The notes below the pieces were generated by a model. The model had not been told where the DNA came from. It ran no database searches and saw only the letters and a list, made by a program, of their open reading frames with translations. From assembly GCF_041956535.1 (NCBI RefSeq), contig NW_027192200.1:213308-249943 (forward strand): a stretch of 36,636 nt of DNA, read 5' to 3'. The position numbers and the translations under genes were made by a program. This document shows positions 724-5,733 of this stretch, piece after piece. The stretch's first letter is position 1, and every line of letters begins with the position of its first letter. The stretch comes from Calcarisporiella thermophila CBS 279.70 (Eukaryota > Fungi > Calcarisporiellomycota).

Positions 724-1017
724 TATTGACCCATCTCGATTCTAAGCTCTCGACTGCGCAAAAATGAATTACTCTCGAGCCCTTCAACGTGGAATCAAAC
801 ATCATGTACGTGAAACCAATGTAATCGTTGTACTTATCGTAAGGGCGATCTTTTTAATAATCAAGACTCAGCTTCTGATCAAGTGGATAGCAGTCACAAA
901 CTAAGAGTAAGTGCTGGTGGGGGAAGTGGGATTCGAACCCACGCCGTTCTCATCGGCATCCCAGGGATAGTCCACTACACTAACCCTCCCCCCATCGGGT
1001 ATCGAGATGGGCCATTA
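724..1017. repeat. Inverted repeat (724-740 vs 1001-1017) bracketing the tRNA-like gene
   Basis: TATTGACCCATCTCGAT (724-740) vs reverse complement of 1001-1017 TAATGGCCCATCTCGAT: 15/17 identical, with a perfect 11-nt core. Confidence 0.55.
915..993 (-). ncRNA. tRNA-like RNA / atypical tRNA gene lacking a canonical anticodon arm, with encoded CCA
   Basis: Minus strand reads GGGGGGA-GGGTTAGTGTAGTGGACTATCCC-TGGGAT-GCCGATGAGAACGGC-GTGGG TTCGAAT CCCAC-TTCCCCC-A-CCA. It has a 7-bp acceptor stem (6 Watson-Crick + 1 G.U), a perfect T arm, an A-box (TAGTGTAGTGG), a B-box (GGTTCGAATCC), discriminator A and CCA. Confidence 0.7.
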
Positions 1018-2387: not shown

Positions 2388-3722
2388 TCAGGCTACGGAG
2401 GCCGTAACCTTCACTCCGTTCTCAACAAACACCGGAATGCCAACCCTATGCGCCTTGTAGGCACGCACTTCATTCAGAAATTCCGTGAACAAGTACTCCG
2501 TATCCTGTGGACCACCTTTGGCCTCTGGGTGGAATTGAACGGATCTCACGGGGCGGGATGTGTGTCGGATTCCCTCGTTTGATCCGTCATTTGCGTTAAC
2601 AAAGTATTTTTCCCACCCAGCAGGCATCTGGTCGTCACGGAGCGCATACCCATGGTTTTGCGAAGTGATCACACACCTTCCGGTCGTGAGGTCAATGGCA
2701 GGCTGGTTATGCCCCCTATTGCCGAAACGAAGCTTGTACACATCCAAGCCTGCAGCCATGCCCAACAGAAGGTTGCCCATACATATCCCGAAAACAGGCC
2801 GATCGTAAAACTCAAGTGTTTGGCGCAGATGTTGCACCGTATCCACACACTTGGTTGGATCACCAGGGCCATTAGAGATAAAGACACCGTCATATTCATC
2901 CGCAATCTTGGAAACATCGTAGTTCCAAGGGAGAAGGGTGACGGCAGCGCCACGCCCAACTAGGCATCGGAGAATGTTCTGTTTGATGCCACAGTCGATG
3001 ACAGCGATGCGCACGTCACCCTTTGGATTGTATTCGACGGGTTCGCGTACGGACACTTCCGCAACAAGGTTGCGCTCATTCGGGTTAGGAAAAGTCTCGA
3101 TATTCTCGTTGATTGCCTTTTCGCCTACAGAGAGATGGGCTAGTGTAGACCCTTGCTCGCGCAGCAAATGGACAATAGCTCGCGTGTCAACGCCACTGAT
3201 TGCAGGAACACCATACCTCGCACACCATTCTCCTAGAGATTCAACAGCGGTCCAGTGCGAGTAATGAGTGGCATAGTCGTTCACGATAATGCCTTGTACT
3301 TGGATCTTTTCGGACTCGAAGTATCGCAAGAGTCCGAACTCGTCACGAGTGGATCCAGGTACTCCATAGTTCCCAATCAATGGCTGGGTGAACACGAGGA
3401 TCTGGCCGCGATAAGAGGGATCAGTCATAGACTCAGGATAGCCTACAAGCGACGTTGTAAAGACCGCCTCTCCAAAAGTTGAATTAGGAGCACCGAAAGA
3501 CTCGCCGTGAAAGATTTGCCCAGTCTTGAGTTTTAAACAGGCGGGCCCAGATTGGGGCTGAACGGTAGAAGCTGAAGGAGCAGAGGGCTTTTGGCTAATG
3601 GAGATAGGGGAGTCAGTCACAGTGGCAAGGCCTCGTGTGAGAGTGCTGAGTGGTTTTATGGCGGCAGAGCGCAGTGACCCGCGGCAGGCGAAGAGAGTTC
3701 GAGAAGCAATAGGGGATAGCAT
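2388..3722 (-). CDS. CPA1: Arginine-specific carbamoyl-phosphate synthetase small (glutaminase) subunit, with mitochondrial presequence
   Basis: [44 protein letters not shown], catalytic [13 protein letters not shown] and VQFHPE motifs; Arg/Ser/Leu-rich N-terminus. Confidence 0.97.
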
Positions 3723-3803
3723 TTTCCAGTGTTTGTGAGATAGTTAAAAATAATTAAAAGGTGAATTGTGTTGAATTAAAGCAGTAGTTTTCGGGTTCTA
3801 TGT

Positions 3804-3952
3804 TTAGAAGTTGCTTAGGGATTTCCAGACTAGGGGGGGGGGAAATTACGATGTTAATGCTTTTGTTATAACTATGGACATAAGGGGGGGGGGGGCTTAC
3901 TTTGGTCGGCAATATAGTCAGAGGCGTTCTTCTCTTGTGTATGACGGTACAT
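3804..3952 (-). CDS. Arginine attenuator peptide (AAP) uORF, two exons: 3952-3901 and 3829-3804
   Basis: Splicing out the GTAAG...TTAAC...CTAG intron (3900-3830, 71 nt) gives MYRHTQEKNASDYIADQIWKSLSNF*. D12, Y13, D16 and W19 align with the fungal AAP core (DYLSDHLW / DYISDHIW). The stop lies 81 nt before the CPA1 ATG. Confidence 0.9.
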
Positions 3953-5733
3953 GTGGATACTAGCCGAAGAAAAGGCTCGAGTGGAGTTTCTGGTTTTCAG
4001 TAATAGCAGGAGTTCTTCTCAAGTCAAATTCAGACCAAGAGAAAGAACGGTGCGGAAGCGATAATAAATAGGAAACAGAGGGTAAAGATAAGAAGTGAAG
4101 AGAAATTCGCCTCACCAGGTGGATTTTATATTGGGGAAAATGCCCCCGAGAAAAATTTGATAAGAAATTATTGCTCATCGCCATATAGAGCCAATGGGAA
4201 TCGAGCGCCCATTTTTATTTTCATTGGGTGCTCTCCACCTGCATGAATCAACAAGATTTTGAATCTCAAGTCATATTCTGTGGCCTTATCCCACCTATCC
4301 TGGTTCCCGTCACAATCCATTGGCCACATATGTTAGAGTAACTTTTCCCAACCCACTCATTCCGTACGGATGCCTGATAATTAGGGAATGCAGGTATGCC
4401 TTCCAGAGAATATGATATAGAGAGCCACTTATCATTCCACGGTTACCCAATACTCGTTAGAATCATGCATGGATTCATGGATAGGAAAATCATTGCGAAG
4501 CACTGGTGCATCTACAGAACAGCTTCAAGTCGTACTTGCAGCATATCATAGAGTATTGTATACAACCTAGGTGAATGTGAAAGACAAAACGTAAATGGAT
4601 GGTCCAGTACATTTCATGGGCCTAATTGGTATCTCCGGCGGGCTTTATTCTCGCTTGTTCCCATCTCAGAAGTTTGCGAAAATTCCTGTATCTAAATGAC
4701 ATGGCTTCTACACCAGTCAATTCATTCGCACTCAGAATAAAAACCGTCCCAAAAGGTGCTTTCAGCCAGTTTATGTGCGAAAATTGTATTTGTCAACTGG
4801 TAACCTAGCCTCAAGTAGTAATGACGCCGTTTCCTCGATTCGCCTCGATCATGCACTTTCTCGGAAGTAGGATGAATAGCCCTGATTCGTTATTTGAATT
4901 ACTACAAAGCTAGGAGGTATTGCATGCTTCAACTAAGATAACTATTAATATGTACCTGCTTGCCTAGTAGAAGAGAGAGAGAGTGGCGCTCAAATCTTGG
5001 ATCAACCTTTTACTTATTCTTCTGCTATATTATATGACGGCTAGCGGATTAACACATCAGGGCATATAAATATATCGATGGGGAAAAAAATAGTCTTTAT
5101 GGTTAATCGCAAGGCAACTAGATCGACAAAAAAATTCAATTAGCCCTGTTATCATGTAAACTCTAACAAATATTTAATCGTTCTATCGAAAATACAGGGA
5201 TTGATTCCTCTTGAACTGACTATATTTAGTTAGTCTATTTATTTATGTATTAGATTCAATCATATTCCCTGCAGTTTGCTTGTGATTATACACTCTAGAA
5301 TAGTTGCGCTAAGCCGCATAGATTAACTAAACTCTAATATTTTCACGACAATTATGAACCTCTTAGTAAGCGAGGCTTTTGAACCTTCAGTTCATATACT
5401 TATCCAACCTCGCATTATTATTGAGAAGCAATGCGGCTGTCCCCCCCAAGCAGAGTTATAAATATATTGAAGCCTATCGATGCATACGCCAACTTCCCTG
5501 CGCTCTCCCCTCCATCTAGACTTCTCCATCCACCAATGGGCGAAGAAGTCTCCACCCCACAGCCTTCTCTTGACTAAATTAATTTAGGTTCCTCTGAAAA
5601 AGCCTCCCGATTAGAAACAAAAGTAGACTGTGGCTTCGGGAGATGGCACTTGTGGAGCGCCTCATTTGTAAAATGATGGAGAGGGATAACTTATTCTCTC
5701 TAAGCAAAATCATCTCCTGATGCTGATATTATA

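Follow-up and report, generated by a model that had tools for sequence, protein, structure and literature searches.

A tRNA-like unit beside tRNA-Lys in Calcarisporiella thermophila as the probable head of a retroposon family that inserts upstream of tRNA genes

The DNA considered here, referred to as the window, is a stretch of 36,636 nucleotides (nt) from the fungus Calcarisporiella thermophila CBS 279.70 (GCF_041956535.1, contig NW_027192200.1, positions 213,308-249,943 of the forward strand). On its minus strand, at 992-915, it carries a tRNA-like unit that an initial annotation, made from the letters alone, had taken for a retained tRNA mimic next to a tRNA-Lys gene. With high probability, this unit is the tRNA-derived head of a non-autonomous retroposon, a short interspersed nuclear element (SINE) designated S1, which landed upstream of tRNA-Lys. 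The tRNA-like 'gene' itself thus falls into an ordinary category, that of a SINE head; less ordinary is the tRNA-targeting system to which it belongs, in which SINEs as well as long interspersed nuclear elements (LINEs) are found divergently upstream of tRNA genes.

The S1 element and its tRNA-like head

The reading as a SINE head is carried by the number of copies and by what follows the head in each of them. A 32-nt junction that runs from the T arm through CCA into GCAC occurs 105 times at up to two mismatches in the window's own genome (28.16 Mb in 116 contigs, the genome meant in all searches below unless stated otherwise), as compared to 0 times for the reversed control, which sets the copy number of S1 at no less than 105, spread over many contigs. 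Searching with the head yielded 40 scored matches of 94-100% identity among 123 candidates, and all 40 continue beyond the CCA into the same sequence, while the whole element as query retrieved 40 full-length copies at 95-99% identity. A pattern for stand-alone heads, with a base other than G after the CCA, gave three matches, all of them full SINEs. Since all junction copies, including these three, carry the SINE body, the unit is never a free gene.

The S1 consensus comprises 328 nt plus a poly(A) tail, about 338 nt in all, and contains no run of four Ts. It consists of the 78-nt head ending in ACCA, a unique body of approximately 195 nt and a LINE-related part of about 55-60 nt, which closes with a small hairpin and TTGATC before the poly(A) (8-13 A in the aligned loci). 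Over SINE nt 275-335, the identity with a LINE's 3' end amounts to 79-82%; this LINE is termed LINE-A. Furthermore, exact target-site duplications (TSDs) of 10-18 bp (median 16) bound 24 of 36 full-length copies, for example, an 18-nt duplication at locus L011, and TSDs of this length are a signature of target-primed reverse transcription. S1 is hence a short, non-coding, dispersed element that combines a tRNA-related head bearing A and B boxes with TSDs and a LINE-derived 3' end, as is characteristic of tRNA-derived SINEs.

One way to account for a tRNA complement at the end of an element would be a remnant of a long terminal repeat (LTR) retroelement, in which plus-strand synthesis had run through the whole tRNA primer, so that the plus strand would be the complement of a tRNA and start with TGG. 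The plus-strand element end does read TGGTGGGGGAAGTGGGATTCGAACC…, like an extended primer-binding site. However, LTRs are lacking, a poly(A) tail forms the other end, and S1 shares its 3' tail with a LINE that has an endonuclease of the apurinic/apyrimidinic type (APE-type). The TSDs are also too long: integrases typically leave duplications of 4-6 bp, as compared to 10-18 bp here. We consider such an origin extremely unlikely.

The elements of the head were read correctly in the initial annotation, that is, on the minus strand between 993 and 915. The acceptor helix (GGGGGAG/UUCCCCC) has 7 bp with a G-U pair at its inner end and is followed by a D-like hairpin (TAGT-GTAGTGG-ACTA). The A box, TAGTGTAGTGG at 982-972, matches 10 of 11 positions of the consensus TRGCNNAGTGG, and the B box, GGTTCGAATCC, lies at 939-929. 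A perfect T arm (GTGGG-TTCGAAT-CCCAC) leads into the discriminator A and the encoded CCA. The extent of the unit needs a correction at one end only: 915 stands, but judging from the TSDs of other copies the element starts with the five Gs at 992, and 993 belongs to the flank. The gap to the tRNA-Lys gene, which is indeed divergent (plus strand, 1078-1150), therefore amounts to 85 rather than 84 bp. No run of four Ts follows the CCA directly, and the first T5 on the minus strand is at 763-759. Together with the absence of such runs from the whole consensus, this would lead one to expect the longer RNA polymerase III (Pol III) transcript that had been suggested.

Where the anticodon arm belongs, the head departs from a tRNA. 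A canonical tRNA has, one base past its D arm, a 5-bp anticodon stem closing a 7-nt loop, and then a variable loop. Here, the D arm leads into a 10-nt linker, and the window copy has CCC-T-GGG where the anticodon stem belongs. Just one hairpin has a 7-nt loop, GCCG-ATGAGAA-CGGC, and it directly adjoins the T stem, with no variable loop between the two. Accordingly, ARAGORN called neither a tRNA nor a tmRNA on the head, and the Rfam covariance models, searched loosely as well (E up to 10), gave no family at its gathering score. The best weak match was tmRNA (RF00023) with 21.3 bits against a threshold of 47, in which the two ends alone align and 328 model positions are skipped. The mascRNA-menRNA family (RF01684) scored 15.8 bits against 42.5, and any match to the tRNA model RF00005 (cut-off 29) would have to lie below the 21.3 bits of the tmRNA match from the same clan. 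The head is thus neither a canonical tRNA gene nor a mascRNA or tmRNA. Its predicted fold (-34.5 kcal/mol) is modestly better than that of shuffled sequences (z -1.79).

These features might also point to a functional tRNA-like gene in its own right (a non-decoding aminoacyl donor, a decoy, a Gcn2-type sensor or a mascRNA-like RNA) that would stand beside tRNA-Lys by chance. An intact acceptor/T minihelix with discriminator A and CCA, the presence of both boxes, the weak Rfam matches to mascRNA and the two tmRNA ends, and helices that are kept across families by compensatory changes (see below) would all suit such a gene. Yet all of the at least 105 copies, including the three with another base after the CCA, run into the same body; the unit never occurs without its approximately 250 nt of shared body, poly(A) and TSDs, and it is the whole 338-nt unit, not the 78-nt head, that poly(A) and TSDs bound. 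Moreover, the CCA is internal and would provide no free 3' end unless the RNA were cleaved, and the tRNA, mascRNA and tmRNA models all fail. A stand-alone gene is consequently very unlikely. Among the several roles that the initial annotation had listed, it is the 'SINE head' that is borne out, and by the very observation it had named as speaking against a mimic, namely many copies with shared tails.

In metagenome contigs, the exact 36-nt core of S1 was absent from those searched. A degenerate junction pattern gave one match there, a different tRNA-like unit at 17-100 of WNFE01096706.1 (L124), which ARAGORN calls tRNA-Gln CTG and in which an encoded CCA is followed by GCACTTTG. It has only 34 nt in common with S1 (from the T arm through CCA into GCAC); this may be due to chance, or the unit may head a distant SINE of some other organism.

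Insertion upstream of tRNA genes

The adjacency to tRNA-Lys, noted in the initial annotation for this one locus, proved to be a systematic feature of S1. Forty copies were chosen by whole-element similarity, 11 of which have an upstream flank that is masked (8) or interrupted by a contig end (3). In 25 of the 29 evaluable copies, SINE nt 1 is separated from a divergent upstream tRNA gene by 76-97 bp (median 83); in one further copy another element lies between (gap 401), forming a stack, and the remaining three have no tRNA gene within 600 nt. Loci selected by the head gave a divergent tRNA gene in 11 of 20 cases, at 79-100 bp. The SINE points away from the tRNA gene in all 25 and all 11 of these associations, and 19 different isoacceptors are targeted. 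Once the TSD is subtracted, the inferred first nick falls 59-79 bp (median 68) from the 5' end of the tRNA. The window copy obeys the same rule in both gap and orientation, and its tRNA-Lys gene at 1078-1150 is the landmark at which the insertion was aimed.

Nicking at a flank motif could conceivably produce the same association; the L1/Tx1 group is known to include LINEs that target specific sequences in small-RNA genes. A repeat of about 70 nt (…AAGTCAC…CAGTCAC…ACTCGAGAG…) recurs in eight or nine of the 25 target flanks, and the SINE sits at or beside its TCGAGAG. However, in flanks free of this repeat (L030, L032, L036, L056, L057 and others) the SINE is found equally far from the tRNA gene, at 80-87 bp. 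This equal spacing in unique and repeat-bearing flanks points to a ruler measured from the tRNA gene rather than to recognition of flank sequence. In addition, the TSD sequences have no motif in common, the 19 tRNA species used are diverse, and within stacks the distance is maintained even where the DNA is the TSD of an older insertion. Sequence-specific nicking of an upstream motif in place of tethering to the Pol III complex is therefore improbable.

Several elements may accumulate at one tRNA gene, and in such stacks the later insertions sit between the tRNA gene and the older elements, so that tRNA-gene flanks represent ordered series that can be read as a chronology. LINEs insert divergently upstream of tRNA genes just as S1 does. 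A LINE-A copy in L070 starts 74 nt from a tRNA-Met, with an older S1 copy displaced outward, and in L068 a copy of a second LINE, LINE-B, has 77 nt between its start and a divergent tRNA-Gln and is flanked by a TSD of 17 bp. The latter encodes the Pfam domains Exo_endo_phos (APE), RVT_1 and zf-RVT, and aligns to human L1 ORF2p over residues 25-603 (579 residues, E 3.8e-53). SINE, LINE-A and LINE-B end in the same architecture of hairpin, TTGATC and poly(A). Judged by domains and similarity, the autonomous partner of S1 would be an APE-type LINE of the L1 clade.

A third tRNA-proximal repeat was observed, which starts approximately 10-20 nt from many different tRNA genes and reads (T)GTTACGAGAWAATTGGTTTTTGGTACGGRAAGTCAC-N7-CAGTCAC-N5-ACTCGAGAG…. 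In L026, L027, L028, L029, L041, L043, L050 and L055 it lies between the SINE head and the 5' end of the tRNA, and it resumes beyond the SINE in L028, L037, L041 and L051. Beginning with TGTTA, it might represent a solo LTR; alternatively, it could form the 5' end of a further tRNA-targeted element whose spacing is much shorter.

Sister families and the fold of the head

A covariance model built on the head found 132 matches in the genome, some of them in diverged families. These comprise S2 (about six nearly identical copies of 305 nt), S3, S4 and intermediates (L073:1128-1445; L104-L123), and the ACCA-GCAC junction is kept in all of them. The older sister families stand behind the poly(A) tails of younger elements, which fits chronological stacks at tRNA genes.

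Across S2-S4 and the others, four helices are retained: the acceptor, the D stem, the T stem and the hairpin beside the T arm. In a model-fitted alignment of 21 heads (20 distinct), 87.7% of the paired cells can pair, as compared to 44-58% when the 3' partners are slid, and at 11 pairs both sides have changed. They include the second pair of the T stem (UA in 10 heads, CG in 7) and the fourth pair of the hairpin beside the T arm (GC in 9, AU in 7), a hairpin in which 93.7% of the cells are paired. Compensatory changes of this kind, together with the kept junction, suggest that selection acts on the RNA fold of the SINE head. Among S1 copies, the head has diverged by 1.2% and the body by 2.9%, a 2.4-fold difference. 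The initial annotation was thus right that intact acceptor and T pairing are not the outcome of random decay. Of the collapsed TCCC-T-GGGA stem that it also described, the CCC-T-GGG is not conserved, and S2 has TTCAGG in its place. A series of sister families with compensatory changes constitutes a rare case for selection on the RNA fold of a SINE head, and offers a testable reason for the encoded CCA.

With respect to origin, the initial annotation had found the 3' half of the head to resemble tRNA-Leu and had compared the hairpin beside the T stem to a long variable arm. The identity to tRNA-Leu genes extends over 20 nt, but these are the T arm plus 3 nt of S1 and nothing beyond. S4, the oldest sister family, folds into a class-I cloverleaf that is nearly canonical and has GCC in its anticodon loop, and one of its copies is called tRNA-Gly(GCC) by ARAGORN. 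Given this class-I form, the hairpin next to the T arm is more likely to derive from the variable loop together with the 3' part of an anticodon arm, and the series from S4 to S1 argues against a class-II (Leu) origin. When the S1-S4 heads were aligned globally with 50 distinct tRNA genes, sampled from the loci retrieved, no convincing parent emerged among these 50. S4 has 54 of 75 identities with tRNA-Ala(AGC) (alignment score 66), and scores lower (54) with the true tRNA-Gly(GCC).

The same comparison bears on another explanation of the window copy, a tRNA pseudogene derived from a normal tRNA gene by deletion of the anticodon loop. The match to tRNA-Leu at the T arm and a middle part shorter than in a class-II tRNA would be in line with it. 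Nevertheless, the same 'deleted' form recurs more than 100 times at unrelated loci with TSDs, none of the 50 sampled tRNAs aligns beyond the T arm, and neither an encoded CCA nor the lack of a terminator is a feature of nuclear tRNA genes. A pseudogene can practically be dismissed, and the unit is best regarded as a SINE head.

ARAGORN assigns tRNA-?(Ala|Gly)(gc) to S1 variants with G33>T and, in the S4 case, tRNA-Gly(GCC) (L029, L039, L115 and others), and its intron option produces spurious tRNA-Thr and tRNA-Tyr calls on SINE heads. Some SINE heads are hence mis-called by tRNA finders, which inflates tRNA counts for this genome.

Proposed mechanism, related systems and surroundings of the window copy

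The proposed mechanism is as follows. The ancestral SINE might go back to a template switch by a reverse transcriptase onto a mature tRNA bearing its CCA end. The head would serve as the Pol III promoter, and the transcript would read through the poly(A) tail into the flank. The ORF2 protein (the product of the second open reading frame, ORF) of a LINE would copy the SINE RNA by virtue of the common 3' end, and a protein ruler on the Pol III complex (TFIIIB/TFIIIC), not the flank sequence, would determine the insertion site. CCA is an anti-determinant for RNase Z. The tRNA-like fold may be kept in order that RNase P can remove the 5' leader and give a uniform start at +1, and the encoded CCA in order that RNase Z is blocked from cutting the promoter head off the body. 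Taken together, C. thermophila might harbor a community of LINEs and SINEs that acquired, independently of amoebae, a Pol III-complex-guided integration approximately 70-85 bp upstream of tRNA genes, similar to that of the element TRE5 and the first with a SINE partner, the head being both a promoter and an RNA device (RNase P for the 5' end, CCA against RNase Z). We advance this combined picture tentatively and give it less than an even chance.

Several points weigh against the SINE reading and the mechanism proposed for it, or should temper them. The 3' truncation of the window copy (see below) has no mechanistic account in the SINE model, and about one third of the target flanks hold, in their repeat, a TCGAGAG-like motif near the insertion site, so that sequence may contribute. 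The ruler on TFIIIB/TFIIIC is proposed by analogy with TRE5-A, and the roles of RNase P and RNase Z draw on general knowledge of tRNA processing. The lower divergence of the head is soft evidence and partly reflects subfamily sites. As for the covariation, it was counted on a model-fitted alignment of a small number of related families, with few independent events and a poorly aligned D arm in S4. Finally, a search of public sequencing runs for the window stretch found no RNA run that contains it, but only runs that share 4-7% of its words, probably owing to the conserved tRNA-Lys.

The closest known system is found in Dictyostelium. The non-LTR elements listed as targeting tRNA genes, namely TRE5, TRE3, NLTR-A and NLTR-B, are all dictyostelid, and TRE5 inserts 44-54 bp upstream of tRNA genes in opposite orientation (PMC5911963); TRE-like elements were not found outside dictyostelids (PMC5006619). 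Like the elements described here, TRE5-A (and likewise TRE5-B/C and NLTR-B) is position-specific and inserts upstream of any tRNA gene in opposite orientation (PMC5911963, PMC5006619). These elements are, moreover, APE-type LINEs of the L1 clade with APE, reverse transcriptase and zinc finger in ORF2, with oligo(A), TSDs and repeated insertion at one tRNA gene (PMC5911963, PMC5006619). The elements of C. thermophila have these TRE5-like properties, that is, a fixed distance, any tRNA, opposite orientation and an APE-type L1-clade partner. They differ in spacing (76-97 bp as compared to 44-54 bp) and in residing in a fungus instead of an amoebozoan, and here a SINE superfamily rides on the system, whereas none is described for TREs in these two sources (PMC5911963, PMC5006619). 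A young and abundant SINE (copies 95-100% alike) that encodes no LINE proteins allows the contributions of RNA and protein to targeting to be separated.

Integrase-dependent LTR elements likewise use tRNA genes as safe havens, as exemplified by Ty1/Ty3 of yeast and DGLT-A of Dictyostelium, which do so via the Pol III machinery (PMC5911963). In contrast to the elements studied here, they leave short TSDs and insert in either orientation, Ty3 at the start site and Ty1 up to about 1 kb away. Homing of an L1-like LINE family to tRNA genes in this fungus would represent a second answer, probably reached by convergence, to the safe-haven problem in a compact genome. In a limited literature search, no paper was found on tRNA-gene-targeted SINEs or LINEs in fungi, nor on repeats of C. 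thermophila.

At the level of the RNA, mascRNA/MEN-beta (RF01684) offers a parallel: a cloverleaf without a normal anticodon arm, situated inside a longer transcript and an expected substrate of tRNA-processing enzymes. mascRNA forms the 3'-terminal part of a Pol II transcript, from which it is freed by RNase P and RNase Z before CCA is added. In S1, on the other hand, the unit makes up the 5' end of what is presumably a Pol III transcript and has its CCA encoded in the DNA. Fungal tRNA-derived SINEs include, for example, Mg-SINE of Magnaporthe. Others, such as AfuSINE2 of Aspergillus fumigatus, resemble S1 in their A/B-box head, tRNA-unrelated body, TSDs, LINE-related 3' part and length (140-500 bp), and for some AfuSINE2 heads the annotation names a 'tRNA-related CCA end' (PMC5063351). 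The SINEs of that study are low in copy number and tRNA genes go unmentioned (PMC5063351), as opposed to at least 105 young, tRNA-aimed copies with fold-keeping sister families here.

In the window, S1 occupies 992-803 on the minus strand. Its head (SINE nt 1-78, 992-915) is identical to the commonest head among 38 full-length copies and scores 104.5 bits with covariance model R1, and the body (nt 79-190, 914-803) was delimited by BLAST of a full copy against the window. In this comparison, SINE nt 1-190 align at 98.9% identity and then give way to single-copy DNA, and nt 191-328 have no further alignment anywhere in the window. The copy consequently lacks the 3' 40% of the element, the poly(A) and the 3' TSD. 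Its break at 803 (SINE nt 190/191) is a 3' truncation, the reverse of the 5' truncation usual for retroposons, and a later deletion is the simplest reading. The 85-bp spacer at 993-1077 fits the gaps of the 25 other copies, and its SINE-side part would be the proximal TSD, the distal one having been lost. The tRNA-Lys(UUU) gene that follows (plus strand, 1078-1150) was called by ARAGORN, scores 72.6 bits with RF00005 and ends in a T6 terminator.

On the other side of the SINE fragment, a single-copy spacer (724-802; no further genomic match over 805-733) separates it from the 3' end of a LINE-B copy (plus strand, 1-723; 114 genomic matches). As judged from its translation, the latter includes the C-terminus of ORF2 with a CX7HX4C motif (2-430), followed by the 3' untranslated region, the terminal hairpin (681-687/699-705), TTGATC and A8 at 716-723. 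Its open frame extends upstream of the window (1390 codons reported, in a partly masked stretch), and its 5' side runs towards a second, divergent tRNA-Lys(UUU) gene at C10:209432-209504, 4.9 kb from that of the window. Each of the two tRNA-Lys(UUU) genes thus has its own outward-facing retroposon, and both retroposons meet mid-way. A 17-nt inverted repeat (15/17), formed by 724-740 and 1001-1017, flanks the SINE fragment. It was considered as a shared TSD and rejected; homologous flanks of the two divergent tRNA-Lys genes fit better, the local alignment of these flanks scoring 20.5 as compared to 10.9 ± 1.9 (maximum 17) for shuffled sequences.

Further along the window, and in support of a fungal source of the DNA, the minus strand at 2388-3722 encodes a CPA1-type small chain of carbamoyl-phosphate synthase (CPSase_sm_chain and GATase). 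Upstream of it, at about 3800-3960 on the same strand, the frames …ASDYIADQ… and …VWKSLSNF (ending in a stop) resemble a split arginine attenuator peptide, a peptide known from fungi.

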